A stretch of 64,000 nucleotides of DNA from Paragordius varius. Taxonomy: Eukaryota > Animalia > Nematomorpha. This document shows, in pieces, positions 614 to 64,000 of the stretch. The position numbers and the translations under genes are program-made. The notes beneath the pieces are model-generated. The model saw nothing but the letters and a program-made list of their open reading frames with translations. It searched no databases and was not told where the DNA came from. Location of the stretch: NCBI GenBank assembly GCA_964247055.1, contig OZ176056.1, positions 2,852,001 through 2,916,000 on the forward strand, in the 5' to 3' direction. Position 1 is the stretch's first letter. Every line of letters starts with the position of its first letter.

Positions 614-835
614 CCATGCCGAGTGTCAATATACATTTTACGACGCAAAAAAATGGTGTAAACCTATCTTGGACAGAATATAACGGGGTATCGTATTCAC
701 TAACCGCTAATGGAAAAATGTTTAAGAATAATATTAAACCAAAATATTTCATTACATATGAGCTGCTTCAATCAAATAAATTAATTTTTACTGCATACAA
801 CAAGAGAGGAGAAACCAATTTTACTATACCTGAAA
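614..835 (+). CDS. FN3-type exon (copy A), identical to 58243-58464
   Basis: cctttag|CC...GAA A|gtaaat. MPSVNIHFTTQKNGVNLSWTEYNGVSYSLT...FTAYNKRGE has the FN3 hallmarks (LSW, Tyr, x-A-x-N-x-x-G). Confidence 0.8.
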
Positions 836-35038: not shown

Positions 35039-36028
35039 ATTTAATCAGATCGTCTCAGTTTTAATAGATGGTCCGTGTTTATTATGGCAATTTCAACATA
35101 GCATTTATTATAAAGTATACGGAGAAAACTACTATCTCGAAATTATTATCGTTATGATAAAGATAGACTTTGTATTTTAAAAACAAATGTAAATACAGAC
35201 TGCATGAATTGTGTTTCAAGGCGTATGACTTCAAGAGTTGAGCAAGTATAAATGGTAAATTATAAGAATTAAATATTATTGGTTTCTTTTAATTATTTTC
35301 GAATCACCGCAATTTAAGTACCGCCGGCGCACATTGCAAAAAGCCATCCGCCAAGTTAAATAATTTAGAAAAGTGTATATAACTTATATTAAGTAGACTG
35401 CTATCATATTATCTGATTATTACGTATTTAAAAATATATAAAAAATAAATTAAATTTTTTATACTTTTTAAATATGGAAATATGTAAATGCAACTAAACT
35501 ATCCCAATTTGAATCGAAGGACTGAAATGAATGTGTTGCATCCAAGTGTTAACTATACCAGGTTTATTTAAACAATATAATAAATACAATTGTTTTTTTA
35601 TTTTTTTTATATAATCAATATACACAAAACAAGCAATCAATAGGTTATCTAATTTTATGTGTGAGAGGTCTAGTGCCAGCCTTTTTTTCGTAAAACATCC
35701 TAATCAAATCATAAAAATTTGTTATTATATACATTGAAAATAACATTAACTCAAATGATAGCTAAAAATATTTGGTATGGTAATTGAACTCTAAACACGA
35801 ACTAATTAACAAGAAAAAAGTTAAGTATTCTTAGTATTTAGATTGTTATATACCAAGGTGTAATAAAAAATTTATCATAAAAGGCAAGATAAAAATAATA
35901 ACAATATAATTTTTAGAGATACAAAATTGAACTGCCCTCATCATTTATTAGATTTCCTATTATATTTGTCAGTTATACCTCCCTTTAACAATTATAACTT
36001 GGAATTTTCTTTTTTTATTTCAATTGAT

Positions 36029-36098
36029 ATGACCAGCATTATGAAATATATTTGGATATTATTATGCTTTACATTGCTATATGGTCAATCAGTTACAG
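36029..36098 (+). CDS. Signal-peptide exon, first copy (MTSIMKYIWILLCFTLLYGQSVT)
   Basis: ATG, hydrophobic core and phase-1 donor ACA G|gtaatt, matching the phase-1 acceptors downstream. Confidence 0.65.
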
Positions 36099-37240
36099 GT
36101 AATTAAATTTTTATGATATATTTGATCGGGTAACTGATTCCTATGCTATTTTATCTAATAAGTTAATTTTTGAATGTATCATAATAATAAAAAAGTTGAA
36201 ATAATTTGACCATTTTATGGCTACATTCCTAAAAAAATATTCATAAGGAAATAATCCAAATAATTGTTGTAAATTAAAATAAGTTTAAATATGATCCCTT
36301 TTACGACTACCCCTGTCGCCTATTCATTATACTAAATTTGGTTGTTAGCGAAATTTTCGGGATGAGTTGGCCTAATTTCAAGCAAAAAAAATCAAGCCAA
36401 TTTTTATCCATTAATACAATTTAGAGAAATTCGACAACTTGTTTGGAATCGAATTACTGCAGCTTTTACAACATATTCTTTAATAGCGTTAAATTCTCAT
36501 TATATTGATAATATAATGATTTATCAATATATATTACAATTTCCTAGTTTTTTGCGTAAGATTATTTAGATAAATCTTACTTTGTTTAGTCGTTGTTGAT
36601 TTTGAGATTCAAATAAGTTGTTAAACACTATGGGTTAGTTATTAATTTATGATTGCCAACTTTGTGTTATTTTCCGATTCTCATTAACAATTGTCCAAAT
36701 ATCATTTGATTCCAACGTTAGATCATTTAGTGTTTAAAATCGGGCAGGAAATAGTTTTAACGACCTTAGAAATAAAAGAAGCTTACTGGCAATAGCCCAT
36801 CCACCTCTTGAGTTAGAAAAACACCCTCATAACAATTAGAGGACGACATAATACCCAATAAGTCTTTACACCGGACGAAGAAGTGTACATAAAGAATGAA
36901 ATCGATTCGGGGTGGAGCAAAGGTTCAATTTTGGAGAGAACAGGGGTAGTCTCGTACACGGTTAAAGATGGAAATCGAACCCTTCGCAATCCTGCTGATC
37001 AATTACGGCCGACCGGTGTCGAGAACGGCGGAGAGGGGGATAATAATTTAACGATAAACCAAACAGATGAATGTATTACAACCAATGATCGGGAGTTGGG
37101 GAGGAACAAAGCAAAGAAAAAGAAAACGAGAAAGACACCCAAGTTGAAATGAAAACGGAAAAGACAACTGAAAAAGAACCGGAGAAAGGATATCCTCTTA
37201 GGGAAAGAAAAGCATCGGCTCGGATTCGGATAATGAGATA

Positions 37241-37498
37241 TGATAGATTTGCACATCAGTTAGCTAACCTAAGACTAGATAAATTTATATATTAGTTTTG
37301 AATTCATTTTTGATGACCGTTTATATTTAAATTAAACTATTTTATCAATTTTGAATTTAACCTGCACACGTTATTTTTCCTTGGTTTAACATGCAAATAT
37401 TATATCCAAAAAAAGTATATAAACATCGCTTATATAGTTTAGTTTTTGTATTTTATCTCAATAAATATTCTTGTTTTACGGTTTCTCGAGTCACCACA
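37241..37498 (+). repeat. Third LTR copy created by the tandem duplication
   Basis: Near-identical to 34576-34833. Confidence 0.9.
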
Positions 37499-38692
37499 AT
37501 GTTTTAACAAATATTATAACAGATTAAAACATATGACATGTGGTACTAACAATTTTTGCTAGTTCAACGCCGAAATTCGGGAAGATTTATTCAAAATATT
37601 TGTTAGAGAAAATTAATTTACTAAAATCTAGTATTTAAAATTCGCTAGCCGCAGAAATTTTTTGGAAAGCCGCATCGGCTCGCAAGCGTGTTAAACACCC
37701 CTCATTTAATCAGATCGTCTCAGTTTTAATAGATGGTCCGTGTTTATTATGGCAATTTCAACATAGCATTTATTATAAAGTATACGGAGAAAACTACTAT
37801 CTCGAAATTATTATCGTTATGATAAAGATAGACTTTGTATTTTAAAAACAAATGTAAATACAGACTGCATGAATTGTGTTTCAAGGCGTATGACTTCAAG
37901 AGTTGAGCAAGTATAAATGGTAAATTATAAGAATTAAATATTATTGGTTTCTTTTAATTATTTTCGAATCACCGCAATTTAAGTACCGCCGGCGCACATT
38001 GCAAAAAGCCATCCGCCAAGTTAACTAATTTAGAAAAGTGTATATAACTTATATTAAGTAGACTGCTATCATATTATCTGATTATTACGTATTTAAAAAT
38101 ATATAAAAAATAAATTAAATTTTTTATACTTTTTAAATATGGAAATATGTAAATGCAACTAAACTATCCCAATTTGAATCGAAGGACTGAAATGAATGTG
38201 TTGCATCCAAGTGTTAACTATACCAGGTTTATTTAAACAATATAATAAATACAATTGTTTTTTTATTTTTTTATATAATCAATATACACAAAACAAGCAA
38301 TCAATAGGTTATCTAATTTTATGTGTGAGAGGTCTAGTGCCAGCCTTTTTTTCGTAAAACATCCTAATCAAATCATAAAAATTTGTTATTATATACATTG
38401 AAAATAACATTAACTCAAATGATAGCTAAAAATATTTGGTATGGTAATTGAACTCTAAACACGAACTAATTAACAAGAAAAAAGTTAAGTATTCTTAGTA
38501 TTTAGATTGTTATATACCAAGGTGTAATAAAAAATTTATCATAAAAGGCAAGATAAAAATAATAACAAAATAATTTTTAGAGATACAAAATTGAACTGCC
38601 CTCATCATTTATTAGATTTCCTATTATATTTGTCAGTTATACCTCCCTTTAACAATTATAACTTGGAATTTTCTTTTTTTATTTCAATTGAT

Positions 38693-41600
38693 ATGACCAG
38701 CATTATGAAATATATTTGGATATTATTATGCTTTACATTGCTATATGGTCAATCAGTTACAGGTAATTAAATTTTTATGATATATTAGATCGGGTAACTG
38801 ATTCCTATACTATTTTATCTAATAAGTTAGTTTTTGAATGTATCATAATAATATAAAAGTTGAAATAATTTGACCATTTTATGGCTACATTCCTAAAAAA
38901 ATATTCATAAGGAAATAATCCAAATAATTGTTGTAAATTAAAATAAGTTTAAATATGATCCCTTTTACGACTACCCCTGTCGCCTATTCATTATACTAAA
39001 TTTGGTTGTTAGCGAAATTTTCGGGATGAGTTGGCCTAATTTCAAGCAAAAAAAATCAAGCCAATTTTTATCCATTAATACAATTTAGAGAAATTCGACA
39101 ACTTGTTTGGAATCGAATTACTGCAGCTTTTACAACATATTCTTTAATAGCGTTAAATTCTCATTATATTGATAATATAATGATTTATCAATATATATTA
39201 CAATTTCCTAGTTTTTTGCGTAAGATTATTTAGATAAATCTTACTTTGTTTAGACGTTGTTGATTTTGAGAATCAAATAAGTTGTTAAACACTATGGGAT
39301 AGTAATTAATTTATGATTGCCAACTTTGTGTTATTTTCCGATTCTCATTAACAATTGTCCAAATTCTTAAAAATATAAGAAATCTTTTGGAATATTGACA
39401 ACAGTTCTTCTTAAATGTCAATTTTTTTATCAAATAATATTGATATAAAATTTAAAATTAATCCTAAACTCAAATGTCTTTAATAGGCAACAAAATAATT
39501 ATTATTTAATCTTTTTGGTTCTATATATTTTTTTGAAAAAATGGGCTAGGAATAATTTGTAATATCTAACATTAACTCAATATAATATAAACCATGTTAT
39601 AAAAGCATGAGTCAAAACGGTTTAAAGCAAGAGTGTCCAACACATGGCCCTCCGAATGCGACCCTTCTAGACATTTTGTGCAACCACAAATTTGAAATAA
39701 GACTTTAAATAATTCGCAAAAATAGTGCTTTTTATGAAATAAATTTAGGAAGAATGATATTGTTGAATTATCTGCCACGGATGTGGTTAACTATATCCAC
39801 AACCGTTTTAATTACTAAATTGAGTTTATCTTTCACACGCGAAACCAAGTTTTGCTGATGAATAAAGCAGTGAAAGGATAAAATATTTTGCAAATTATTT
39901 TGGTTTTTCAAAAGAGGAATAAATATTTTATTTATTCCAATCATAGAGGGATAGCCATCTGTGCAGATCAAAACCAATTTTTCATAGAAATACCATTATT
40001 ATCGAAAAAAGTGTTATTTCGAGAAAATCACTTCCTTTCGTGGTATTATTCATTGGTAAAAATTTAAATATTTATTGTTGATTATGTTGTCGTTGCAAAA
40101 TCTTACGAAAAGCGTACATTGAGGTGTTGTACCAATATCAATGCTAGAATCAATAGCATTATTAAATTTGCAGTTTTTCAGAGCCAATAATGCATTTGAC
40201 ATATCTTCAATGCGTCGAGCACATGTTGCAGAAAGTTGAATTGTTTTAATATGCCTCATGATTTGATCTTCATATGGAATTTATCAAATGAAAAAGTGCA
40301 ACCATTTATTAGACATTCTTTTAGTTGGGAATCAGTAAACGGTTTCATATTTTTTCCTAAAATATAACAAATTTCATACGAAGCTAATTATACAACTTTT
40401 TCCTGGGAGAAAGCTATGGACATAATAGATTTTCTTTTCTGGTATAATTCCTTAATCTTTTAATATTTTTCGTTTTTCCTCATGATTTTCTGGTAATTTA
40501 TGAGAAAAATGGATTGTAAAATTCTTTCAATATTGTATTTTTTTATAATTATGTTGTCCTTACATATAAGGCAGGTAACAACATTTTTATTTTAAACGAC
40601 AAAGAATTTTTCTTCCCATTCTTTTTTAAAGGGCGATTTTTATCGAATAATTTACGTTTTTTAGCATTAGATGTCATCCTTTGAATTTTAAATATGATGT
40701 AAATTTTTTCAAAAAATAGAAATATAATTTGAACTACACTATAAAAAACAAATTGAAATTTAATGATGTTTATTAAAAATATTTTATGGGAGTTATAAAA
40801 AATGAGGCAGGATAGCTATGAAAAGATGTTTTGGGTGAAAGACTTGCTTAAATACAAAAAAGGAAAGCATTAAAAATTTCAAAATAGAAAAGAAAATATA
40901 CAGAAACAATGTGTGCCAAATTTTGGAAATTATTTAAATGTAGGGAAATTTTTCTACATTTCAAATTGGGTAAAAAATAAAAACTACCAAAAGAAAATAA
41001 ATTAAAATTAAAATAATCGAAAATTCGTTTATGGATTAGAAAAATAATGTAATCAATATGGTCATAGGGCAATTTTAAAGCACTCTTAGGGCCGCATGCG
41101 GCCCGCAGGCCGCGGTTTGAGGATCACTGTCTTAAGCTTTTCATCATGTATCAAAAAATAAACATATTGCTATAAATTTGCATTCATTGTAAATTTTAGA
41201 ACGGAAAAAATTAGGACTTTCAAACCACTAAAATTTTAATTTTTATAAAAATATTGTTTGGATTGTTATATGTAATAATATATCTTGATATTTTTGGAAT
41301 GAAGCATTTTTTCGCCAAAAATTTTATTTATCATGTGTGCAAATTTCCACCATTTTATTAAGGTTTTACCACAAATTGATGATTTAATCACATGCAATTA
41401 AAACCAAAAGCACCATGATAATATTGATCTATTTTCCTTTCTTAATGTATCTTTTAACAGGATATTTTTGTAACCTAGGAAATTTATTTTGTGCAAAACT
41501 AATGTAATTATTTTGTACCAAAAAAAAATTAAATGGCCTATTTAATTATACAGATGAACCTGTGAGCGGATCTGGAATTTTTCCAGTAAATAAAGATATG

Positions 41601-44600
41601 GCTATTATTCAATTCTTTTATTATTATAATAGGATAAACTATTTTTATATTCCCGTTACTTCAAGGCGGTTTTGCTGAAAATTATATATAAAATTTTTTC
41701 AACTATAAAAGCGGCATCACTTATAATAAAATTTTAAATTATCAAATTTTTTTAAACCTACGCTATGACGAAAGGTTAAATTAGGATTAAAAATTGAAAG
41801 TTTTTCTTATAAAATCATGTTTTTAGTTTCCTTTAAACATACTCTGTGGCTGGGGTCGGCACGGTCCAATGTAAGCCCTTGCGCGGACAAATAATCTATA
41901 AAATTTTAAAATAAAAATTTAGAGCCTTCATTTGCTATTATTTATTTATCTATCGTCATACTAACTTGTAAAAATAAAACAGTTTTTAAAAAATAAGTCA
42001 TCATCGGACTTTCACTTAATATAAGAATTTAAAGCCAAACAGTTATCAGAAAATTTGTTTAATTATGTTTATATATATATTATATATATATATATATACA
42101 TATATATAGATCTAGTACCTTCTAGCGGTGATGTTTCTTCCAGATCAATCGACGGTATTATAAATTAAATTAACATATAAACTGAATATATCTCTTCTTA
42201 ATCTTTTAATTGGTTTTCAATGCCAGACCAATTTTTTTTATTTAATAACCGGTGGTATTGTATTAAAATTAAAACACGTGTATTTCAATTTTTTGAAAAA
42301 AAATGATTATATATGAAAATAATTATTTTACACATATAGAACATGTTTGATTTTACTTGAAAATTTATAGGAATTAAGATAACTTATTTGTAAAATATAA
42401 AAATACATCAATTATATTTTTCCTTATCAGAAAAAAATTAAATTGTGAAAAAATTTTTAAACTGCAATTATCGCCTTTTAAAATTTTTTTCCGCATATTT
42501 TTCAAAATGACTAATATTTAATTCTAACTATAATTTATGATAAAAATTTGATCCCTTAAATCAAATTAAAATAAGCACTCAGTTTCAGAAGCATAAATTA
42601 ATATAATTCAATTCTACACCTAAATATTAAGTTTTATCAAACAATTATATCAGGTCCTGAACTAAAACGTTTCCCATTAAGATGTAATCTATATTTTTAT
42701 AAAAATGGAAAAGGCTGGCTTTGTGATCTGGTACAGGAAAACCAGTAGACTAAATATCCAAATATCGAAAAAATATAATCATTAATAAATGTCCCGACAA
42801 TAGCTTCGCCCTTTTTTTGAAATAGGCCCCCAGTTCGGGCCCACCCCGTATGAAAAACGGGTTTTTTTTAAAAACAGAAGTCCACAAAATCGTGTTTTTG
42901 AGACAATTTTCCGGAGAACGTGTTGGACCATTCAATTTCAAATATGATTTTTGTTTACTTATTTTCGATTGCGCTGAACATAGTCGAGTCACTTTTTTGA
43001 TTTAGGCCCTCTTTTTACCCGCTCCCCCCGTAAAATGCCATTTTTTTCAAAAAACAAAGTCCACAAAAATAATTTTTTAAATCGATTTTTCGCCCTAGGT
43101 ATGAGACCGTAAAAATTCAATAAAGATTCCACGTATTCCCTGTTAAAAGGCAAAATTTTTAGTCCACCGTTTATTTGATGATAGCTGCTGAGTAAGGAGT
43201 ACCTATCATATGTATAGCATGTTAAAAGATATATGGATATTAATACATTATTTATGGTAATCTATATATTTATAAAAATGGAAAATGCTGGCTTTGTGAT
43301 CTACAGGAAAAACGGTAGACCCATTCAAATCCAAACTTCAAACCCCCCCTCCCCCAGAAGTCCGAAGGACTTCCTCGGGCTGCGTAGCAGCACGAGATTC
43401 ACGCTAGTATAAAATAAAAATAACCACATTTTTCCCTAATAGCATAATTGAATTCCGCGTATAAACCGTAAATCTATTTTTACAATTGCATCATGTTATA
43501 ATAAAAAGACATTAGGTTTAATGCATATTTTTTTAATATACTAACAAAAATTTTATATTTTTAATTAAACAGGAATTTGAGTTACTAAAACATATTTTGC
43601 TAAAATTGACGTGTTTTATATCAACTACATTCATTCAATCTGTATTTGTCTAATGGGTACTAAACGTGAAATTATCAAATAAATGGGCGGTTTCTTACCA
43701 ACTTGTATTGTGAGGATTCGACACTATAAAAATTAATTTCTTATATCGAATTGGCCGTGGGAAAATATTTTCTAATAAATGAGAAAGGCTGGATTTATAT
43801 GCATATATGTTTTTGAAACTATTTATCCAATTTACCAAAAGATTGAATTATGTTTTCAAGGTATTGCAAAATTTTTTTTTAACATATCATGACATAATTA
43901 TGGCAAAAATATAGGGTGTTACAGATCCCTCAGATTAGTAAAAATATTTAATATGGTTAGTTGTCGTTTTTTATCAATCACTATCTAACCAATTTTGATA
44001 GCTATGATAGTTATATATGTAATATTTAAGATGCTCCATGATATACCTTTGCAAATCTGTTAAAATGTATATTAACTTAGTTCCAAATATCTTTCTTTTA
44101 AGAAACAATAATTTTTTAATGCGAATGAAAAATGACCTCTTTTGTCAAATTATAGATAATATCTTTAAAGAAAAGTCAAAAAATCAGATATTAAATATTG
44201 GGGAATCTTTAAGTATATGGGTCGAGCTAGTGGAAAACTTTTCTAATTTTAATAAAAGTCAATGGAAATTGAATGGTAAAGAAATCACGACAGGTTATAG
44301 ACAAGATTCAAAAACTTATACTTACACAAAAGACATGATCAACTTAACAGATGGAGGAAATTATACCTTTAGCATTGGTTCAAAATCAATAAATATCTCA
44401 GTGAGAATCATTGGTAAATAATGTTAATATATATTAAGTTGTAGTTTTTGATATATAAATATATATTTTTTATAATAAGATACATTTTTTTTATTTAGAA
44501 CCAGTACCAATTACTTATGGCAATAATCAAGTTAAAATTAATTTTTCTCGAGTCATACAAAAAAATCAATTGTACAATGTTACTACATATCAAGACTATT

Positions 44601-47600
44601 ATATAAATCATACCACAAAGAGTTTCTCAGAACTAAGCCCTTACATACATCATTTACCATTTGACACTATATGCATTTCAAATTTGATAGAAGAATACTG
44701 TTTTGATGTATATCCAGGTTATATAATTTTAATTTAATAATATATATACAGCGTCCTAAAAATTTATTGATGAAAAATTTATATTCTGATTTGGAAAATT
44801 TAGAATAGAGTGATATTTTTCATTCTGGTTTTAAAGAGTGATATAAGGAAGTTTTTGGTCAATGCTAAATGCCTTATGCCAAAAAATACTAAAATATGTC
44901 AAAAACAGATGAAAGCAAAACAAAAATTTTAAAAATTATTTGTGGGCTCCACCAAATTTTTTCGCTATTCTAAAATGGGCTACTATTAAAATAAATACAA
45001 AAATGCTGAGATTGCGAGATAAAATGATAATATGCTAAAAATTTAAAAAAAAATAAAAAATTATTTTTCAAAGAAATTAGATATTTTTGATAATATCTTA
45101 AGCTTTTATAATGTTCCCTATCAAAAAATAATTTTGCTAGAAATTGAATTTTTAACCAGCGCCATCACTTATAATAAAATTTTATATCAAAATTTTTAAA
45201 CCTACACTATGACGAAACATATTATTTGGAACAATTTACAAAATATAAAAAATTAATTAATACTTTAAGAGGTTAATTTATTTCATGTAGAAAATTATAA
45301 AGTCTCTAATTTGAAATATGAATATCTACCTGATTTGGATATAAAATTGATTTGGTCAACTTACAGCCCAAAAGTGAAAATATATGATGGATATAATTGT
45401 GAGAATTTTATAAACGAAACATCCGAGCACGCATACATTATAAAATACGCAACTATTAGCAAGAAAAATCAAACTTATTGTTTACAAACTGTGAATCAAA
45501 GCGAAAATTTGTTTGAAAGGATAGCCGTAACAATACCAACAAGTATTATTTAGTTATAATTGTGAGACAATCAAAAGATGTAAAAAATAGATTTTATATT
45601 ACCATAAAACTTGTTTTGCAAACTTCCGTCAAATTAGGATTAAAAATTCAAATTTTTTCTTATAAAATCATGTTTTTAGCTTTTAAACATATTCTGCGGC
45701 TGGGGTCGGCACGGTCCAATGTAAGCCCTTACGCGGACAATATCTATAAAAATTTAAAAAAAAAGTTAAGAGCCTTCATATATGTTATGTATAATAACTT
45801 AATTGTTTTTGTTAACTTAACTCAATTGATCTTATTTTAGTTACCTTATGAAAATATAATATCCTTACCTTTGTGCATAATACACCTTTGTACTTGTTAC
45901 GCTAAAAATGTATATTATCTTGGTTGTGAATGCTTTTACCTAAATACTGTAATATTGAGCCTTATGCAAATATATAACTTGTGAATGCTTTCATCTAAAT
46001 ATTGAAATATTTAACCTTATGCAAAAATGCAACCTCGCTCTTAAACTATATATAATGGAACATAGTTTTTTATGATATAAAATAAATTCCTTTTTTTTCG
46101 CTTATTACATTTGGCGCGGTCGATTTTTTATTGTATTACGTTGTATTCATTATTATGGAAAAAATAAGTATTGAAAGTTATAAAATCAATAATAATTTTA
46201 CGGAATATATTAAATATTTACGAAGAAATTTAGTAATTAAAGGAATACAGGATAATAATGAAAATATTAAAGCCATCTTTCTTGCCCAATCCGGTATTGA
46301 TAACATTTCTAAAATGGAACAATTCTTTTACCCCGTTAATATTGAAAACATATCTTGGGAGGAGATTTATGAAGCTGGGGTGAATATTTCAGCCAACCAA
46401 AAATACTTTTTTATCCCGATTCGATTTTTTTAGAGCGGAACGATTAGCGGGTGAAGGATTCTTGGAATTTTTTATAAGACTCAAAAATATGGCCGCTGCA
46501 TGCGAATTCAAAGTAAACGTTGACGAATTAATACGGGACGTGTTTATATGTGGGTTTAACGAGAAAAAACTAGAGACTGAACTGCTGAACAGGTACCCAA
46601 AGGCATTAGACAACGACATACCAGTGGGATTAAATAAGGTTCTAAATTTGGCATTAGCGTATGAAAATTATCACCTTGAAGTGAACTCAGTGAGAGCAAT
46701 ATATAATAATAAAAGTATTAATAATGGTAATAATAATGGTAATACTAATGGTAATAATAATGAAACTTTTAATGATGGTAATATTAATAATAATGAAATA
46801 TATATGGTAAGACGCAAACCTGTCGTAAAATCGTGTTTTAAATGCGGTCGCGCCCACAAATACGGATGCTGCCCAGCGTTTGGGATGGTATGTTTCAAAT
46901 GTCAGGGTAGAAATCATTTCGGAAGCCAATGCCAAAACAAATATGCTGGCAATAACAGGTATGTGAATAATATCGTAAATAAACCTAAAATAAATGTAAA
47001 AATAAACTCAACCCACGTCGAAATGTTATTCGACACGGGGGCGGACATATCTTTAATAAATTTTAGCACGTGGGTTAAAATAGGAAAGCCTAAAATAAAA
47101 CCCATTTATTTTAACATAAACACTTATGATAATAATCCTTTACACATAATAGGAGAGACAACTGTAACTCTTGAATTAATAAAATAAAAAAGATAACAAA
47201 ATGCTTTATAACGAAGAGACATCTTCCTCTAATATTTGGCATGGATTGGATCCAGCTATTCAATATCTCATTGCCTAACGAATTATATATTAATAAATTA
47301 TATCACACAAATGATATTTACAAATATTTAAGTCTTTATTTGATAACAAATTGGGTTGTTGGAAAGGGGAACCCATAAAGATATTTTTAGAAAACAATAG
47401 TAGGGGACGGGTATTTCCGGCTAGAAGGGTTCCCTTGGCCTTACAAGAGAAATTAAGTGAAGAGATTAAAAGGCTAGTATCCTTAAAAATTATTGAACCA
47501 GTAGACCCCAAGCAGTTTAAAATTTGTTGGTCCAGTCCTATAGTAAACGTATTAAAGTCAAATAATGAATTAAGAATATGCGCAGATTTTAAAGTGTCCA

Positions 47601-53600: not shown

Positions 53601-56600
53601 TATAAAACACTTTAAGGAATTTGAAAATATTTGAATGCCAAATGTTAGAATAGGGTTCGAGGTTTAATTAAGTTCAACATCAACGATATATATATAGAAA
53701 AGGGGTATATATACAAAGGTTTGTTTTACCGTTTCACCATACTCGAAAACATCTTAAAATACGCATCAAAATTTTATAAAATTATAACTTTTAACCAAAC
53801 TAGGCTTTTAATATAATGTTTGATGTTATATCCCATATATGCAAATTCTTATCGCAAAATTTAGTTTATTTTAGAAGGCGTCAAATATATATGACGTTCG
53901 AGACTCACATCTTATAATTAGAATTAAAGAAGCTTGCTTTCTTTTAATACTCCTGACATTTTGGGGTAATATACCCTATCCTTTTACCTTTTATAGACGC
54001 TTGCAAAAAAAATTTATTTAAAATTCCTTATTTAATACTTTTTACACGCCATTTTTTCAATTATTTAAATCGCTAGTACAACATGCAATAAATAAATATG
54101 TTGGTTGAACAACGTAAGCAATTAACTTTCGAAGGCTCTAATTACGATTTAACACCAAATTTTCGTAATTGATTTCGATATCAGTTGTGCTTTTGAATCT
54201 GTTCTGGAGCTATCTATATTTAGGGCTCTGGAAAAAATTAAAATATAAGTTTTTTACACCCTGTGTCACTGCGTAAAAATTTATTTCTTAGATAGCCCAG
54301 CGAATTCATTTGGCGAAAAAAATTAATTTATAGATGACCTGGTTGAAAGAGAAAATTTAAATTTAGCATCTCTTATCATTTAATTTAACACAATAAAATA
54401 CTTATAAGATTAATAAATTATATTTTTTGAGTAATACTGTTTTATTTTGGAATCCTACCTGAGCGGGAAGTGGAATTCAACGATCTGCATACAGGTTTAC
54501 ATATAATATTTTTACTGAGATTTACGGATATTGGTTGAAATTACATTAATTGTAAATCCTATTTTGCATTAATTTATATAGATTTGATTCCTGCTCATAT
54601 AAATTCCAAAATAAAACAGTTAAATATTTTATTAATTTTATTTAATATATGCGTTTTTAGTATAAATTATAAATGTTAATAAATTTAAAGTTAAAAAATT
54701 TTTAAGTTCATAACATTTTAATTGTGTAAGAAATATGTTAAAGGTTTAAACAGGATTTTTGATCTGAGTTTTAATAAAACCCTAATTATATGATTTTAAG
54801 CTATTAAATATGTAAATATCTGATATCTATAAATAATTAAATATCTCAAGTTTAGATTATTTTTTCCTTGAATAGATTTAATTTCCCGATTTTTGCCCAA
54901 CTTTGATTTTTCAAATTTAATAAAAAACAAATTACAATTTTTGTGGCATCGCTGGTTATAGGCTATCATATAATAACTCTTTTTGCTTGCAAACAGGGTG
55001 CAACATAAGATGCGATAATTTAGTATACAATCTTAAAATGAAGATTAACATATATATATATATATATATATATTGCATTACTTATACAAAAATTGCTTAT
55101 GATTATTATTATTAATACGTGAAATAGATCAATTCAATGACAACGTTTTTTTAGTTGTTACTTATTAAGCAGAATTTTCTTAATATATGAAAGCGACTGT
55201 TATAGTTATTACGACCATTTATACTAATAATTTGTTTTATTTATAAAGATCCTTTAGTATCCAAACTCTATCCCGATCAGGTTACAACTGATTTTTCACC
55301 AGTTGTGGAACAAAATCAAACTTATTATGTTAGTATTTATGAAAATGAATTTGAAGTTAACGAAGAATATATAAGGAATAATACCCAACTAACACCCTAC
55401 ACATATGAAATACCTCCAAATTTTGAGGGATCATATACTTTTTGTATCACCGCTTCTTTCGAGGAATATTGTGCGGAGGAGATTGATATTCCAGGTTAAT
55501 ATTTTTAGTATAATCTTATAAGTTCATGCGGATCATTATGCAATTTTTAAATTTTATCTAAAACCTCATCGTGTTAAGTGAAAACGAGTTTAGGTGGTTT
55601 CAAAGCCACGCGAGACAAAAATATGGAATTCAAAATTTTATATTTTTAAAACTCTATAAAGATCATAATTTGGCTGGTTTAATTTATTTTTTTCCATGAA
55701 CATTTATGAAGTGGATATTGAGCCATGTTTTTCCCGAGAGTTATGACGGAAGAGGCCACTAAGCATATATGATCATAATTCATAATTTTACGTTTAAAAT
55801 TAATTGTTAAATCCCTCATATAATTGTAAAATTGTCAAACCTGTATTCTCGCTAATATTTATTCCGGATGACTATATTTTAAATTCTGAAATGTTAATAT
55901 ATATAAGATAAATGATAAAAGGTTTATTAACTTTTATATATTATTACAAAAGGAATTATGCTAGATAAATTTATTAAATGACTAGGGAAGCGATGGTCAA
56001 AACCACTGGCAACAAAACGGGGTTTAATAATTGATGCTATGAAAAATATATCGCCAATACCTAAAAGTTTTAAGATACGTATAAATTGACTGAGAATACG
56101 GTTAAGCTAGAAAAAGTTTTTGGTAATTTATAATTGACTAAAGTAAATCGCATCTTCACCCTACACCAGGGCAAAAAAATAAAAAACAAGGTACCATCAG
56201 CAAAAATTTATTCGTTAATATGATGTGGAAACATAAATTTAAAAGCTAAATGTTATTTAATCTGTCGTATTTCAGCAGGGTCTTGGGGGCCTAAATATTA
56301 GCTTAAACATTACGATTTGCTTCAAATATGAATAAAATTTATGTGCGGATAAAATTCTATTTATTTTACCATACACTTACTAGATATTAAGAACGTACCC
56401 AATATATAACTCAAAAATAGCAGCAAGATAATAAATATTAACAGTCCTCGAATATTTTCATATTATAAATATTTTTGATGTGATAAAATAATTTTGGCAC
56501 CATTTTCGCTTTGGGTTTTATGTATAACAATCCATGTATAAAAATAAAGTCAATTCTTTTTCTACATAAGATTTTACAGAATAAATATAAATATTGGAAA

Positions 56601-59600
56601 TTAATTATACTCAATTTCCAATGCATATTATCTAAATCTATATAATGTATATCATATATATCATATATAAAGGTGTAGTCATAAGTTTTTATTGTTTTTT
56701 GGTTAAACAAATAGATAAATTAGAGAATCATTTATTGTTTAATATGTACACGGCTTCACATTTCGCCCTTGAAGGTTTTGTTGAATCATTTATCAATGTT
56801 CTCCAAATTAATGAAGTAGTGCTTTATTAGGTTGAGCTTCATTGATGTAAAGATGTAATAATCAGATAGAGTCAGTTGAGCAGGGCGGATGCAAAATTTT
56901 TTTTTCATCATACAGATTTTAAGGCGTGAATCAGCTGTGTGAGACGAAAAATTGTTACGTAGCGAATCACTTTGTCATTTCTGGCTGGGAGGTTTTTCGA
57001 GTAATGCATCGTTTAAATTAATCGAGTTGCTTATTAATGGTCTCCATAGCTTTAAACATAATAAAAATACCAGTAACACATGTTATTTCTAAAGCGATTC
57101 AGGTATTTGTGTTAATGGACCCTTGGCAAAGTAAAGACGATTATTTTCGTTTAGCATTTATAATGAAGCTTTTTTCATCATCAGTCACATTTAGTGCAAA
57201 AACACCTCATGACGCTTAAGCAGGTTTCGGAAGTCACTTAATAATTTTCATGTTTATTTAAATTGTGTAGGCCTTTTTTTACCAAGTTTGGCCAATCCCA
57301 TTGCTAGACGCCTGCTGAATATCCAAACATGGAATGCTATTGCCAACTGTTGATTTCGAATTGGGTCCTATATCCAATAACTATTGTACCTGATCGTCTA
57401 TGTGGTCAACCAGAAAGACCACGGTTCTTGAACACAATTTTTGAAACCATTTAACGTGATTTAATTGGGATAGCATGTGTTAAAATGACGTTTTTTTTAA
57501 ACCTTTTTTTGATGAAACAAAACATTCTTAGCGTTCTGAAAATGTTCTTCGAAGTCAGAAAATTTGATATAATTACCGAGTGATAAAATAAAACGCTACC
57601 TTTTTGCGGAATCGAAATGCTTATATAGTTTAATATCAAATGAAAAGTTCTATATAAAATCGATCGTTTGCCCACTTTTTGCTCATGTCTTCTCTTAGTT
57701 AGGTAATTACATAAATTTATATCACAATGTGAGTTTGTGGGAAGGTGTTTTCAATATGCAATTTTAACTTACTTCCATTTAAAAATCAGAAGATTGCAAG
57801 GTAATTAGCATCAGTTATTATTAAAATATTGATTATATAGTTTATTATAGGGAAGTTTACTTTCACTATGGTTGCCCTAATTTTTTACCGCATTGTTCTC
57901 TTTAAAATCCAAAATTATAAAATATAACATTAGAAAATATGATAAAGGAGCCTAAATTAAGTATTTTAATTTTATACCTGTTTTAATATTAAAACAGTAT
58001 ATAATTTGTACTAAATAATCTCAAATTAAATATAACAAATCTAAAAATCATGATTTTAACTTAGACTCACTTAAAATTAATTCATTTTCCCTTTATGCAA
58101 AGATTAAATTAAAAAATTGTAATATTTTCAAATTATTATCATTAAAATTAGTATCTTTTTCATGTTAGTTATTCAGTATAAAAGGAAGGTGAATATATTT
58201 AACTAAAATAAATGTATATCTATTTACTTTTTTTTCCTTTAGCCATGCCGAGTGTCAATATACATTTTACGACGCAAAAAAATGGTGTAAACCTATCTTG
58301 GACAGAATATAACGGGGTATCGTATTCACTAACCGCTAATGGAAAAATGTTTAAGAATAATATTAAACCAAAATATTTCATTACATATGAGCTGCTTCAA
58401 TCAAATAAATTAATTTTTACTGCATACAACAAGAGAGGAGAAACCAATTTTACTATACCTGAAAGTAAATTTTAAATGAAAATAACATTATGCATCGTTA
58501 TTTATTTATTATTAATTGTAATTATAATTAAATTCTATCAATTATATTAAAATTTAAAAATTATTCAGATGAATAGTCCCAGATTTTTCTCTTTAAAAAT
58601 ATTAATGGTTTTTGTTTGTAATGGGTCGCGTTCACTCTTATACAATTATTATTGAGTAAAAAATAATGGTTTATTATGGCACTGCTAATAATATTCCCAT
58701 ATATAATTATAACATAGCACCTATAATATCCGCAATAAGACCGAGAGAAATAGGGGAAAAAACTACTAAAATAGAGTGGGATTCCAATGTCAACTTTTTT
58801 AACATATTTGAAGGCGAAAACTGCGAAAATTGGTTAAACCATACATCCAATCCATCTTATAGTGTATTCTTAAATGCGTCGACCAAGAAAATATGTATTA
58901 GTGGTAGCAATGGATACTTCTCTGGCCCAATCAAAACTTTTGTCCTTAAACCAACAAGTATGTGCAATATATGTTTTAACATGTTTTATATCACATGTTA
59001 TGCCAACAAATTAATATTGCCACCTACCCACGGTGTTGGCTTAGGCATGAAAATGCCCAAACGGCAAAGGCCAGTTTCTAATGATCAGTAAAATCATTAG
59101 TTGTACACAAGGGCATTTGCACTACGTAAAAATTGCATCAGATTACCAAAAATATTATAAATATGAATTTCGTGGTACGAAAACTACGAATCCGGAGTCC
59201 TACCCTATGATGATGTATCACATGTTAGTATATTATTTACAGTTCAAATTCACCCTTGAAAAACTCAAATTCAACCTCGTCAATTCAATTCGCCCTAAAC
59301 TGAATTATGTGCTTTTTAAGATTAAAACTTACCTTATTTTTTAATATTTTTAAAATATGAAACTCTGTTTAAAATTAATATAATGCTGATATCGTAAAAA
59401 TATATCTCATATTACTGATAAGTTATGTTAGAACTAGGGTTGTGCTGACCAAGTTATGACCGGTCAATTGACCGAGTCATGACCAGGTCAGTGAATATTT
59501 ATTTTTTAACCATGGTCATTTAAAAAAACAACTGTTTTTGAAAAATTGAATTTTTTTTGGAAGAAAGATATAAAGATTGTATAGTTTTTTAATATATTTT

Positions 59601-62600
59601 CTAAAAAATATATTTTAAATATGCTTATTTAACAATATGATATTGTTAAACATGCATTTTTATAACATTAGGATTTAATATCCAGTTATTTCGAAAAACA
59701 AAACAATCAAGAGCTTTTCAAAATATGGAATTATTCCATATCTGTGAACCAATAAAATGAATAACATTATATAATTGTATATTTTAATGATGAAAGAAAG
59801 TGTCAAACAAACTAGGTAAAATTTAATTTGAAATATCCAGTATAAGCTATGTATTTGAAGCTTCAGAAGGCCACAAACATGTGGCAAAATTCAATTTTAT
59901 ACAAATTTCTTGATTAAATTTGGTTAATATTTGTAAATAAATATTAAAAAAATGTATACTACAATCTTTTTAAAAAATATGATATTATTAGTGAAACGCA
60001 AGTGTAATTCGAACTTTATTTTGACAATCCAAAATCGCAAGATACTTAATTAAGTAAAAAGTGGTCATGACCCTGACTGGGTCTGACCGGACTTTTTTGA
60101 AAAAGCAGTCAAATGCACAACCCTAATTAGAACACATAATATATTTGTAGGGTAGATTCGAATTGTTGAAGAGCGAATTTGAATTGTTCGTTAGGCCATT
60201 TTTTCATTTTGACTAATTATAAAATATGCAGTAAATTTTTGAATTCTTCATATAACCTCTCTTAAAAACAACCGCAAAATCTTATAAATTATTAATATAT
60301 GATTATGAAATTTCAATATATTTGGTAAAAAAAAAAGTTTAAAGTTATATTGCCTAACACTTCATGTTTCAATTTTTTCCCGAGTGACATATTGGGATAG
60401 TTGTATATCTAAGAGATCCATTATAAGTTAAACTACTGTTTTGAAAGTTATTTTGGTAAAAAATTATCAAACATTGTCAGGTAAGATAAAAAAGCATATA
60501 CTTTTTTTACAGATTTGTGACTACTAGAGTCCAAAAAAAATCGGAACAGCTCATATAAAAAATATATATCATGTTTTCGCTGATATTTGCAAAGTTAATT
60601 ATTTACCTTTTTAACCATAAAATACACTTTATTAGCCTTGTTGCATTGGCGATTTAATAAAAATTATAGAAAAAATGGCGGTGAAAAGTTAGAGATGAAA
60701 ATTGTTTTAAAAATTTGTATAATGCGCCAAAGCACTAAAGAATATACCTTAAATCAGGGGTATCTAACACAAATGGCTTAAAGAGCCACATTTAAATTAA
60801 TATAATTCAAGACAAAAGTATCAAATAAATATATTCCTCAAACTTTCATAGATGTGTTAATTTTTATATTAAACTAGCGTGAATCTCGTGCTGCTACGCA
60901 GCCCGAGGAAGTCCTTCGGACTTCTGGGGAGGGGGGGGGGTTCGAAGTTTGGATTTGAATGGGTCTACCGTTTTTCCTGTAGATCACAAAGCCAGCATTT
61001 TCCATTTTTATAAATATATAGATTACCATAAATAATGTATTAATATCCATATATCTTTTAACATGCTATACATATGATAGATACTCCTTACTCAGCATCT
61101 ATCATCAAAGAAACGCTTGACTAAAATTTTTGCCTTTTAACAGGCAATACGAAAAAACTTTCTCGAATTTTTCCAGTCTCATACCGTGGGCAAAAAAATA
61201 CAATCAAAAAATTATTTTTGTGGACTTTGTTTTTTGAAAAAAATGGCATTTTTTGGGGGGAGCGGGTAAAAAGAGGACCTAAATCAAAAAGTGACTCGAC
61301 TATGTTCGGCGCAATCGAAAATAAGTAAACAAAAATCATATTTGAAATTGAATGGTCCAACACGTTCTCCGGAAAATTGTCTCAAAAACACGATTTTGTG
61401 GACTTCTGTTTTTAAAAAAACCCGTTTTTCATACGGGGTGGGCCCAAACTGGGGACCTAATTCCAAAAAAGGGCGAAGCTATTGTCGGGGCATTCATTAA
61501 TGATTAAATTTTTCCGATATTTGGATTTAAATGGCTCCACCGGTTTTCCGGAAACAGATCACAAAGTTATATGAAAAATCAGTTTTTAGCGGGTAGCTCC
61601 TTACCCAGCAGCTATCATCAAATAAACGGTGGACTAAAATTTTTGCCTTTTAACAGGGAATACGTAGAATCTTTATTGAATTTTTACGGTCTCATACCTA
61701 GGGCGAAAAATCGATTTAAAAAATTATTTTTGTGGACTTTGTTTTTTGAAAAAAATGGCATTTTACGGGGGGAGCGGGTAAAAAGAGGGCCTAAATCAAG
61801 TGACTCGACTATATTCGGCGCAATCGAAAATAAGTAAACAAAAATCATATTTGAAATTGAATGGTCCAATACGTTCTCCGGAAAATTGTCTCAAAAACAC
61901 GATTTTGTGGACTTCTGTTTTTAAAAAAACCCGTTTTTCATACGGGGTGGGCCCGAACTGGGGACCTATTTCAAAAAAAGGGCGAAGCTATTGTCGGGAC
62001 CTTTATTAATGATTATATTTTTTCGATATTTGGATTTGATTGGATCTACCGGTTTTCCTGTACCAGATCAAGCCAGCATTTTCCATTTTTATAAATATAT
62101 AGATTAAAAAAAACAACCATAGTGTGAGACGCGTATCGTCCTTGTTAAGGACTTATTCATAATGAACACAAGCATACTCTGTCAGTATTTTAAGATTTTA
62201 AGACGAGTGATAACGAAAGAGAAAACAGAGAACTTAAGGCCTAGAGAGGGCAACCAATTGTAGTTAGATCAAGCTAATTATCATAATTCCTTCTTATCCA
62301 TCAGCCAGGATAGGGAATTTATAATTAAAATTCACCAATTTTTTGGTGGCCATTTTTATATTTAAGGGTAGGCTAATATTTACGATCTCCATATTATGTT
62401 GTTATTAAATATAAAAATGGCTTTTTCCGCCAAGATTTTTGTGAATTTTAACTAATAAAAATATAAAATTTTGCTGTTAAATTGTACTTGAATGGAAAAT
62501 TAAACTTTTTATAAAGATCTGCTAATGATGAAAGCACAATTATATAATATAGCATGATGTATATTTTTCACAAGGACAACTTAAACCACCTTACTTAAAA

Positions 62601-64000
62601 TCCTGCTGTACTATGTTTAGCATGCAATATTTATATAAAAGATATTAGAAAAAAATGTATGGACTACCGAATCTTTTATAATTGTATTAAAATAAATCCG
62701 ACATCCTAATATAGATCAATATTAACAATGAGCTGCTTGTTTCACCGTTTTGAACATATTCTTTACAATGACCCATGTAATGAAATGTAGTTATTTTTAT
62801 ATAATAATCTGCTTTATAGCACAATTCAAAAATATGGCTTTTCACTAAATAAATAAAAAACATTTACCAATTCTAAATATTTTCCAATATATAATTTATA
62901 ATTCCAATAATATGGGTAGTTGTAAAAGGTAACAAAGCTATGAAACGTAAAACTGAAAAGATATTTATTCGGTTTTTTGTGTTTATATATATACTATAGT
63001 GAACATAATTTGCATGATAACAATAAAATTTCGAGTAACAAAGGATATGATATTTACATAGTACAAAAAAATATAAAAATAAGACAATGCAAATCTCACA
63101 AAAGATTATAGTATACAAACAAAATATATATTCATATGTTACAGTATTGCATCTTAAAAATGGGACTGGGGTTTTCAATATGGCTCTTTTACAAAATAAT
63201 TATCAAAAAGTTTAGCAGTGGAAGTATTCTAAAGATTCTCAGATTGTAAAGGAATGATTCAATGAATGTGATGAAAAATAATAAAAAATATTATGAAAAT
63301 GCTCGTTTTTGAGTTTTTATTTCAAATCGCTCAGAGATATACAACTCCCCCAAAATGTCATAGATATAAATACCACCTTTATATTATAGTTTTTTCGACA
63401 AATATATGAATATATAAATCCTAATTCTCTATTAAAAATTAATGCGTTTACATATATGAAATTATGTGAATTGTATATCCAAAATTTTTGTTTAATATTA
63501 GTAATAATTATTTATATACAATTAGTTTATTCTGGCTCTGGTACAAAGGACCCTGGTTTCCAATCAAGTTATAAAAGAAAAGGTATTATTTTTTGTTAGG
63601 TTTTTGCATTTAAATGAAACAAAAGTTGCGTTTGGATTGCGTTTTTGGTTAAAAAAAAGTTTTATTAAAAAAATAGTGCGATATATGCCTATTATTATTT
63701 TGCTTTCCTCTATAACTTAGGTCAAGATGATGGGTCTGGATTACGGCATTCTGGTTATAGGGGAAAAGGTATGTTTTTTATATAATTATGTTTTCTAAAA
63801 CTAGAATATGATTTGACTGGCATACAGAAAAGTTAGCATTCAAAGTTCCTTTAAAATCCTTCATAATACTCTAATGATTTACTACTATATCAATAGTTTG
63901 CAGTTTGCTGGAAATCTTTTAGTTTATTGTTTTTAAAATGTGTAAGACATGATTTTTCCTCGTCACATATTATCTTTTAATAAAAAAATAAAAATTGTAG
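38693..64000 (+). CDS. Secreted Ig/FN3-like modular protein gene, copy B (exons 38693-38762, 41554-41586?, 44156-44413, 44499-44717, 45291-45542, 50588-50839, 55249-55494, 58243-58464, 58718-58957, 63526-63582, 63721-63768; last exon beyond window)
   Basis: Nine internal exons are open, phase 1-1 and multiples of 3 (258, 219, 252, 252, 246, 222, 240, 57, 48 nt). Joining them into one transcript is inferred. No transmembrane exon was found. Confidence 0.7.
39628..41129 (-). mobile_element. Degenerate hAT (GTF2IRD2/Charlie-like) element in intron 1
   Basis: Minus-strand motifs IQLSATCARRIEDMS, ICTDGYPSMIG, FHCFIHQQNL. Ends caagagtgtccaac and tttgaggatcactg, approximate. Confidence 0.8.
41554..41586 (+). 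CDS. Candidate micro-exon 2 (DEPVSGSGIFP)
   Basis: Good acceptor tatacag|AT, GC-rich island, Ser-Gly motif like the 3' micro-exons. The donor reads cca|gtaaat (phase 0), one G short of the expected phase 1. Confidence 0.4.
42688..43407 (+). mobile_element. Non-autonomous Helitron
   Basis: A|TC at 42688, hairpin 43374-43396, CTAG|T at 43404-43407. Same family as 3036-4263 with one fewer ~510-bp unit. Confidence 0.9.
44156..44413 (+). CDS. Ig-like domain exon 1 (cysteine-less I-set-like)
   Basis: tatag|AT...ATT G|gtaaat. LNIGESLSIWV...QWKLNGKEI...TDGGNYTFSIG carries the C-strand Trp and DxGxY motif with Phe in place of Cys. Confidence 0.8.
44499..44717 (+). CDS. Two-Cys FN3-like exon 'a1' (missed by the ORF track)
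   Basis: atttag|AA CCA...CCA G|gttata, 219 nt open. EPVPITYGNNQVKINFS...ICISNLIEEYCFDVYP is homologous to 55249-55494. The fold assignment is tentative. Confidence 0.75.
45291..45542 (+). CDS. Two-Cys FN3-like exon 'c1'
   Basis: atgtag|AA...ACA A|gtatta, 252 nt. KLIWS...IYDGYNCENFINETSEHAY...YCL matches IEWD...IFEGENCENWLNHTSNPSY...ICI of 58718-58957. Confidence 0.78.
45783..50355 (+). mobile_element. Full-length Mag-like Ty3/Gypsy LTR retrotransposon, inactivated, in an intron
   Basis: LTRs 45783-46109 and 50098-50355 (TG...CA), 5-bp TSD ATATA, PBS TTGGCGCGGTCG, PPT before 50098, internal gag-pol. Confidence 0.97.
46131..49819 (+). pseudogene. Gag-Pol (double CCHC knuckle, protease LFDTGAD, RT, RNase H, integrase)
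   Basis: CFKCGRAH..CCPA..VCFKC..NHF, LFDTGAD, LRICADF, LILETDAS, HKGHPG, RLHLDIAGP, IVTDNA, PYHPRTNGLVE. Several frameshifts and stops; YLDD has lost 4 nt near 47879. Confidence 0.95.
50588..50839 (+). CDS. Ig-like domain exon 2 (paralog of 44156-44413)
   Basis: caacag|AT...ATA G|gtaaat. VNVGQKLELFV...IWQINGTEI...NDTGTYTFVVG. Confidence 0.8.
50900..51110. mobile_element. Small MITE with ~30-bp imperfect TIR
   Basis: tatcatttacatttcaaattcaccct versus agggtgaatatgatttgtaaatggtata. The core ttcaaattcaccct recurs at ~1403 and ~59243. Confidence 0.45.
51376..52034. mobile_element. piggyBac-type MITE
   Basis: TTAA on both sides; TIRs begin CACTTGGATACAACACATTCATTTT and match well for ~45 bp, loosely to ~90 bp. 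Solo ends of this family at ~35500 and ~38165. Confidence 0.75.
55249..55494 (+). CDS. Two-Cys FN3-like exon 'a2'
   Basis: ataaag|AT CCT...CCA G|gttaat, 246 nt open. DPLVSKLYPDQVTTDFS...FCITASFEEYCAEEIDIP. Confidence 0.78.
56881..57480 (-). mobile_element. Possible decayed hAT fragment
   Basis: TIR-like cagggcggatgca at 56881 and weak minus-strand similarity to N-terminal regions of ZMYM-type transposases (LLDIGP...; GSIN...CV..IF). Confidence 0.25.
58243..58464 (+). CDS. FN3-type exon (copy B)
   Basis: Identical to 614-835. Confidence 0.8.
58718..58957 (+). CDS. Two-Cys FN3-like exon 'c2' (copy B), hypervariable
   Basis: aacatag|CA CCT...ACA A|gtatgt, 240 nt open. PIISAIRP...KIEWDSN...ENCENW...KICISGSNGYFSGP. 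Confidence 0.8.
59001..59215 (+). mobile_element. 215-bp retroposon-like insertion (SINE or 5'-truncated LINE)
   Basis: Absent from copy A, where a single tatcacatgtta sits at ~1376-1387. Flanked by the 12-bp direct repeat TATCACATGTTA (58989-59000, 59216-59227) and ends in ATGATGATG. Confidence 0.8.
59435..60125. mobile_element. hAT MITE (copy of 1603-2288)
   Basis: Same TIR and TSD. Confidence 0.8.
60874..62103 (-). mobile_element. Non-autonomous Helitron (copy of 3036-4263)
   Basis: Same A|TC...hairpin...CTAG|T ends. Confidence 0.85.
63526..63768 (+). CDS. Two Ser-Gly micro-exons (63526-63582, 63721-63768), copy B
   Basis: Identical to 5682-5738 and 5876-5923. Confidence 0.7.

Follow-up and report, generated by a model that had tools for sequence, protein, structure and literature searches.

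A 64,000-nucleotide stretch of the genome of the horsehair worm Paragordius varius (positions 2852001–2916000 of contig C7, hereafter the window) contains, scattered among transposons, short coding segments that resemble immunoglobulin (Ig) and fibronectin type III (FN3) domains. Do these segments belong to a single gene and, if so, what would such a gene make? An earlier note on this DNA, written from the sequence alone, had proposed an unannotated secreted protein assembled from both kinds of domain. Here, we describe the locus, gene B, together with its paralogues in the same assembly (110.5 Mb, 44 contigs). We find that the segments splice into one frame of 627 amino acids, that the same exon set recurs in a tandem array and that the conserved first exon encodes a putative signal peptide. 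Gene B is probably genuine, encoding a secreted glycoprotein, and part of an Ig/FN3 family that is small, young and restricted to its lineage; its product would be an extracellular rod of seven domains, constant at its core and variable in its end modules, that acts by binding.

Structure of gene B

The window has a GC content of 24–41%, in an AT-rich invertebrate genome of roughly 28% GC, and is crowded with eukaryotic transposons. We built the gene model from the reading frames of the plus strand together with inspection of the DNA at every candidate exon boundary. The mini-exons, which a scan for Ser/Gly-rich open frames had missed, were located by tblastx against a diverged paralogous locus (far1). 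Gene B consists of 11 plus-strand exons, and all ten junctions between them are GT–AG and phase 1; an all-phase-1 arrangement is a classic mark of exon shuffling among extracellular domains. The product of 627 amino acids (617 internal codons and ten junction codons) is ordered as signal peptide, Ser/Gly-rich (SG) linker, Ig, FNa, FNc, Ig, FNa, FNb, FNc and a tail encoded by two exons.

Exon 1 (36029–36098) supplies the start codon and a 23-codon putative signal peptide and ends in phase 1 at the donor GTAATT. A 2664-bp tandem duplication (34089–39700, copies 94–100% identical) doubles this exon and its upstream region, and the near-identical second copy of the exon (38693–38762, plus strand) may be an alternative first exon or intronic. 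The same 2664-bp duplication is also found at a twin locus, B′, where its second copy is damaged. The SG mini-exon (42110–42154, phase 1–1) encodes a linker of 15 codons rich in Ser, Gly and Asp. It is followed by Ig1 (44156–44413), an I-set-like Ig domain without a Cys pair; FNa1 (44499–44717), an Ig-like/FN3-like β-sandwich with two Cys nine residues apart; and FNc1 (45291–45542), an FN3 domain with two invariant Cys. The second half repeats this theme with Ig2 (50588–50839), again I-set-like and without a Cys pair; FNa2 (55249–55494), a β-sandwich of the FNa1 kind with two Cys; FNb (58243–58464), FN3-like by motif only and free of Cys; and FNc2 (58718–58957), an FN3 domain with two invariant Cys. 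The tail begins with the hydrophilic T1 exon (63721–63768, 16 codons, with D-D-G-S-G and H-S-G-Y-R-G motifs). It ends with T2 (32 nt, window-equivalent positions 64227–64258), which encodes G-L-L-D-D-Q-D-T-W-K followed by the stop codon and sits, with that stop, 227 nt past the window end.

The earlier note had described scattered exons in one frame, and every exon that it listed lies at or near the place given for it, in a single frame. The exons are, as it had said, spread over 28 kb among transposons, one of which, a Ty3/gypsy-type long terminal repeat (LTR) retrotransposon (45780–50360, plus strand), is noncoding for gene B and occupies the intron between FNc1 and Ig2. Its size estimate of about 640 amino acids becomes 627 in our model. 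The Ser/Gly-rich pieces that it placed at either end correspond to the 15-codon linker exon and the 16-codon tail exon, which are real, but the final exon lies beyond the window.

Three other exon arrangements were considered and rejected. One was a division into two separate genes, at the retrotransposon. FNc1 ends in phase 1 without a stop codon, and in the two paralogous loci without the element, A and A′, FNc1 is only about 460 nt from Ig2; the exons therefore do not make up two genes. Another was read-through of FNc2 into a 44-codon extension; the FNc2 donor is conserved, as are T1 and T2. A third was a longer FNc1 with its acceptor at 45270; both far1 and the FNc2 exon favour the acceptor that gives a start at 45291.

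A tandem array of paralogues

Searches of the neighbouring sequence with the exon products (tblastn) identified further loci of the same make-up. The exon set of gene B recurs in collinear order in locus A (C7:2.7865–2.8083 Mb), locus A′ (C7:2.8377–2.8584 Mb), locus B′ (C7:2.938–2.967 Mb), the twin of gene B, and far1 (C7:3.1007–3.1231 Mb), a diverged copy with 35–58% amino acid identity. A shorter copy on the minus strand, far2 (C7, around 4.785–4.805 Mb), is a pseudogene. The 3′ end of A′ falls inside the window (614–6413, plus strand), with FNb at 614–835, FNc2 at 1096–1344, T1 at 5876–5923 and T2 at 6382–6413. The family comprises four tandem units of roughly 50 kb, the diverged copy and the pseudogene, all on one contig, and whole-genome profile searches found no further members. 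It seems to be young, small and restricted to this contig, and it had been missed in the earlier note.

In each of the four tandem loci (B, B′, A and A′), the 11 exons are all open and bounded by canonical splice sites. A and A′ show 100% identity to gene B in both the signal peptide exon and the SG mini-exon; for the signal peptide exon, identity to far1 is 74%. The tail exons T1 and T2 and their splice sites are likewise conserved in A and A′. In far1, the sequence and splice sites of all three mini-exons (SG, T1 and T2) have been retained, despite the low overall identity of that locus. The two outlying copies are incomplete. In far1, only the first 25 or so codons of Ig1 are left, followed by a stop; the exons are phase-symmetric, and a transcript that skips this remnant would stay in frame. 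In far2, FNa2 and FNb contain stops, the signal peptide exon is frameshifted, and Ig1, FNa1, FNc1 and Ig2 are all missing. The exon order shared by five loci and the mini-exon splice sites retained in far1 bear out the single-gene proposal, and the scattered exons appear to form one real gene.

Domain identity of the exon products

Sequence and structure searches covered the exon products one by one, and in Pfam, for which we took the gathering cut-off as the criterion (models I-set PF07679, Ig_3 PF13927 and fn3 PF00041), no exon passes the threshold. Ig2 comes closest, at 17.7 bits to I-set (cut-off 23.7; E = 0.0039) and 18.5 bits to Ig_3 (cut-off 30; E = 0.003); Ig1 reaches 14.5 bits to Ig_3 (E = 0.05), below the cut-off. 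A profile of the paralogous Ig sequences (A2, six sequences) is more informative, matching titin among solved structures (5jdd, E = 1.9e-9) and next the Ig domains of FGFR, contactin and Dscam. W34, D63, G65, Y67, T68 and F69 are invariant in the Ig exons, giving a D-x-G-x-Y-T-F motif. Neither position of the canonical Cys pair of strands B and F holds a Cys in any Ig copy, in agreement with the earlier description of Ig domains that keep the core Trp and DxGxY and lack the Cys pair. Many muscle I-set domains are also without this pair, and its absence does not exclude the fold. The genome contains at least 152 canonical I-set exons and at least 71 canonical fn3 exons, and genome-wide scans with these two models do not recover the exons of this family at E ≤ 0.01.

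For the FN exons, predicted structure carries the assignment, as Pfam fn3 matches none of the five. An AlphaFold2 model of FNc2, built with seven paralogue sequences, has seven strands and a predicted local distance difference test (pLDDT) score of 84. Its best Foldseek matches are tenascin-type FN3 domains (template modelling score 0.70). In a VIA scan, which is independent of Foldseek, every one of the top 50 chains is an FN3 domain (Z 8.8–10.2), with a root-mean-square deviation of 1.9–2.7 Å over 70–79 of 79 residues. FNc is thus predicted to have the seven-strand FN3 fold. The FNa2 model scores slightly higher (pLDDT 88), and its Foldseek and VIA matches are a tie of Ig-like domains (PECAM-1, myomesin, T-cell receptor) and FN3 domains (Z 7.2–8.7); on this model, FNa would be a generic Ig-like sandwich, unspecific between Ig and FN3. 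FNb resembles FN3 by motif only, with a Trp in strand B and an A-Y-N-x-x-G-E motif at strands F–G, and its language-model features lean to fn3, a weak lead.

Sequence comparisons add one link for the FN exons, a weak match of the FNc profile to a bacterial FN3-repeat protein (E = 1.5e-4). Profiles of FNc, FNa and FNb searched against solved structures in the Protein Data Bank returned nothing meaningful; in hhalign, neither FNb nor FNa had detectable profile similarity to FNc, and FNb showed no relationship to the bacterial FN3 protein. The product is a mosaic of Ig-like and FN3-like domains, as had been claimed, by the profile matches of the Ig exons and the predicted fold of FNc. The earlier naming of all FN exons as FN3 is borne out for the fold of FNc; FNa is an unspecific sandwich and FNb a resemblance by motif.

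The FNc profile was also compared with 1.84 billion protein cluster representatives, a library that does not hold this genome, and gave three weak matches, none of them a relative. A word search with the Ig2 open reading frame (ORF) yielded no candidate, its own ORF included. Such blank searches say little about sister species, because the libraries do not hold the ORFs of this genome. In the literature on hairworm Ig/FN3 proteins we found no report; the closest case is an analogy, the FN3 proteins in the Schistocephalus secretome. The statement in the earlier note that the architecture matches no named family agrees with the lack of any relative in the libraries searched and of any match above the Pfam threshold, a weak negative.

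Features pointing to secretion

Exon 1 has the typical layout of a signal peptide, with a basic residue, a hydrophobic core of 11 residues and then L-Y-G/Q-S, and it is conserved in all loci (frameshifted in far2). In the remainder of the product, no 19-residue window rises above 1.22 on the Kyte–Doolittle (KD) scale, and both tail exons are strongly hydrophilic (KD below −1.3). No transmembrane segment or glycosylphosphatidylinositol (GPI) signal was found in the 11-exon model. Membrane anchoring of either kind was considered and rejected on this hydropathy profile and on the position of the stop codon, which is conserved in far1. Within-exon shuffling predicts 9.2 ± 2.7 N-x-S/T sequons for the mature part, which has 21, a number reached by 1 of 20000 shuffles. 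This is a 2.3-fold enrichment, and the reversed motif, with nine occurrences, is at chance level.

Paired cysteines occur in four of the FN domains. FNa1 and FNa2 each place one Cys in strand F and one in strand G of the model, with a spacing of nine residues; in FNc1 and FNc2, two invariant Cys lie in the CC′ turn and strand F. From these positions, both FNa and FNc may contain a disulfide. The two conserved Cys that the earlier note ascribed to each of these domains are present in every FNa and FNc of gene B and invariant throughout FNc, but the FNa pair is missing in the FNa2 of far1. Its other observations on this point, namely a secreted product, dense sequons and no transmembrane or GPI segment, agree with what we find. 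These features point to a soluble product that enters the secretory pathway and would be both secreted and glycosylated.

Exon-wise divergence between paralogues

Compared with A and A′, gene B is a mosaic. The signal peptide, SG, FNa2 and FNb exons are 100% identical, FNa2 across all four tandem copies, and we refer to FNa2 and FNb as constant exons. Amino acid identity is 88% in Ig1, 85–87% in Ig2, 86% in FNc1, 66–68% in FNa1 and about 48–55% in FNc2, the most variable exon (against A, 55% over aligned codons and 47.7% with gaps by tblastn). Four exons, Ig1, FNa1, Ig2 and FNc2, are more diverged than their own introns, and we call these the variable exons. At the nucleotide level, Ig1 is 94.6% identical against 98.9% in its upstream intron, FNa1 87.2% against 92–93% in its flanking introns, Ig2 94.4% against 98.7% and 96.7%, and FNc2 73.7% against 92.5% and 99%. 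The ratio of nonsynonymous to synonymous substitution rates (dN/dS) is 3.2 for Ig1 and 3.5 for FNa1 against A′, 1.3–1.6 for Ig2 against A and A′, and 1.7 for FNc2; for FNc1 against A′ it is 0.35. Pooled over the four variable exons, the excess of replacement changes gives a Fisher p of about 0.02. Around FNc2, the divergence forms an island (58640–59215), with the exon 74% identical to A′ and flanks 98–100% identical, and the island adjoins a 215-nt indel just downstream that is common to B and far2. Ig1, FNa1 and Ig2 show a milder form of this pattern.

Read as a binding protein, gene B would work as follows. Its product would be a rod-like protein of seven β-sandwiches, two I-set-like Ig domains and five FN3/Ig-like domains, held between the linker and an acidic tail, and would act outside the cell in binding or adhesion. 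The signal peptide, SG, FNa2 and FNb would provide a constant scaffold. Ig1, FNa1, Ig2 and especially FNc2, which differ by mainly amino-acid-changing substitutions, would create several binding variants, and these may face a changing partner, for example a host factor, a mate or gamete, or matrix. The binding function and its partner are what we infer here; among the roles suggested in the earlier note (recognition, matrix or decoy), the evidence that bears on the choice is the fast, exon-specific divergence of the paralogues. The FNc2 island fits diversity maintained or imported over concerted evolution, with too few copies to separate selection from conversion.

Several points weigh against this interpretation. 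The FNc2 island runs about 80 nt into the upstream intron, and gene-conversion mosaicism could mimic selection at this exon. The dN/dS values above 1 are based on few substitutions (3–9 synonymous changes). Variable residues are not concentrated in loops, strands being hit as much. The absence of outside relatives is a weak argument, with libraries that lack this genome.

Some of these points would suit a different protein, a structural spacer rod of matrix or cuticle without specific recognition, whose paralogues differ through relaxed constraint and patchy gene conversion. Beads-on-a-string FN3/Ig domains with a conserved terminal linker and tail could offer cross-link or attachment sites, and both the spread of variable positions over strands and the reach of the island into the intron are as this model would have them. 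Four exons more diverged than their flanking introns, with a replacement excess, speak against it: relaxed constraint alone is disfavoured because it gives a dN/dS of 1 or less. The same four exons are, moreover, perfectly conserved between B and B′. We regard a matrix rod as unlikely, if not negligibly so.

The binding interpretation can also be extended into a germline diversity system, in which concerted evolution keeps a constant scaffold (signal peptide, SG, FNa2, FNb and tail) identical and selection holds or drives the recognition exons apart. The secreted variants would be directed at host immune or neural targets or would serve mate or gamete recognition, and the ancestor would be a titin-like super-repeat that gained a signal peptide. 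The variable invertebrate Ig superfamily (IgSF) proteins would then be functional analogues of the array. This fuller scheme is doubtful, and we offer it tentatively.

Coding constraint

Over 23 kb, gene B shares 98.8% identity with B′, and the substitutions between the two avoid exons: 0 of 1734 exon positions differ, against 91 of 15609 aligned intron positions outside transposable elements (Fisher p = 7e-5). Over the longer distance to far1, dN/dS is 0.28–0.64 in all six comparable domain exons. The gene is clearly under coding constraint. A gene-like array that is non-functional or unexpressed, with exons intact only since the duplications are recent, could account for a locus riddled with transposons, for the decayed far2 and for the loss of most of Ig1 in far1. 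It fares poorly against four loci with 11 open exons and canonical splice sites throughout, the significantly lower number of changes in exons than in introns, the dN/dS below 1 along the long branch to far1 and the maintained enrichment of sequons, and we consider it very unlikely.

Comparison with known systems

Gene B represents a new orphan IgSF/FN3 family of a well-known kind, not a new kind of protein. IgSF adhesion molecules are extracellular and glycosylated, with Ig/FN3 modules on phase-1 exons, and those such as NCAM, L1/neuroglian, DCC and LAR have a block of Ig domains, a block of FN3 domains and then a transmembrane or GPI anchor. Gene B shares the modules and the phase-1 exons with them and differs in that its domains alternate, no anchor was found and no Pfam threshold is reached.

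Soluble class-I cytokine-receptor α-type proteins, for example IL-12 p40 and CRLF1, are secreted and combine an Ig domain with two FN3 domains, and an Ig-FN-FN module is present twice in the gene B product. The best structural matches of FNc2 include cytokine-receptor FN3 domains (Z 9.2–10.2), and plain FN3 domains score equally. Class-I receptors are defined by four Cys in their first FN3 domain and a WSXWS motif in their second, and gene B has neither: the Cys of FNa number just two, confined to strands F and G, and FNc reads N-G-x-F-x-G-P where WSXWS would stand. Membership of this family was rejected on both absences.

Dscam-hv, the snail FREPs and Hydractinia Alr are secreted or surface Ig proteins, some of whose exons are highly variable, in tandem arrays. 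The likeness to gene B, tandem genes that combine variable with constant exons, is a lead only. In contrast to them, the gene B family has about three sequence types, no exon-cassette array and no sequence relationship to these proteins, and we see no evidence of somatic or allelic diversification in it.

The closest match in domain order is the D-zone super-repeat of the titin A-band, which runs Ig-Fn-Fn-Ig-Fn-Fn-Fn (PMC7427331). Gene B has the identical order, a correspondence that the earlier note had not drawn, and its I-set-like Ig domains, free of a disulfide, have titin as their best solved-structure match. It differs from titin, twitchin and projectin in its putative signal peptide, its dense sequons, the Cys pairs of its FN domains, its size of 627 amino acids and its lack of a kinase. 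FN profiles showed no similarity to the canonical fn3 exons of the worm's own genome, those of a twitchin-like gene included. The resemblance to titin may be a coincidence or may reflect distant descent from such a gene. That gene B itself encodes a cytoplasmic, sarcomere-type protein, a small titin/twitchin-like unit with a spurious 'signal peptide', is highly improbable: it would account for the domain order, the titin match of the Ig profile, Ig domains without a disulfide as in muscle and the nearest non-family Ig matches in the genome, which lie in an I-set array on contig C4 (at only E ~0.002), but not for a signal peptide exon conserved in all loci, enriched sequons, paired Cys in four domains, FN profiles that find no match in the twitchin-like gene or a small protein with neither kinase nor other sarcomeric parts.

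Both genes count among the canonical Ig/FN3 genes of muscle type in this genome. The twitchin-like gene lies at C5:2.60–2.64 Mb and alternates I-set and fn3 domains. The I-set array belongs to a giant gene at C4:11.66–11.84 Mb, in which dozens of almost identical I-set exons follow one another at intervals of about 300 nt as two alternating sets, each with a period of about 596 nt.

Transposons, repeats and neighbouring genes

The Ty3/gypsy element encodes domains matching the Pfam models RVP, RVT_1, RT_RNaseH, Integrase_H2C2 and rve, with pol split over at least five frames, and two pieces of its LTRs (45979–46083 and 50230–50334) are identical. B and B′ carry the element, which inflates their FNc1–Ig2 intron, and A and A′ lack it. 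This distribution indicates that it inserted after the split of A and B and before the duplication that gave B and B′. A repeat of about 500 nt forms an inverted pair in two introns of gene B (42810–43355 and 60928–61473, 84–99% complementary), recurs in tandem at 61084–62070 and is also found near far1 and far2; it is probably a non-autonomous transposon. Two further segments of the window, 14030–15849 and 31904–32428 (both plus strand), represent other transposons, with pieces of a transposase of hAT type (zf-C2H2_12, Dimer_Tnp_hAT) and part of a non-LTR reverse transcriptase (RVT_1).

The spacer of about 30 kb between A′ and gene B contains two exon-sized ORFs of serpin type, at 18283–18693 (plus strand) and 24587–24958 (minus strand), with Pfam Serpin E values of 6e-8 and 1e-19. 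Their position in the spacer places secreted protease-inhibitor genes, or fragments of them, inside the repeated unit.

Implications

As a type of protein, the gene B product is unremarkable among the vast number of IgSF/FN3 proteins. Its recovery illustrates that Ig/FN3 domains to which Pfam is blind can be found in very AT-rich genomes by combining paralogue profiles with structure prediction. The array also offers a clean example of exon-wise mosaic evolution, in which identical and highly diverged exons stand side by side inside one young duplication. The secreted proteins of horsehair worms, a phylum of host-manipulating parasites, are very poorly known. If our reading as a binding protein is true, a fast-diverging, glycosylated tandem family of Ig/FN3 proteins would be a candidate for host–parasite or reproductive recognition.

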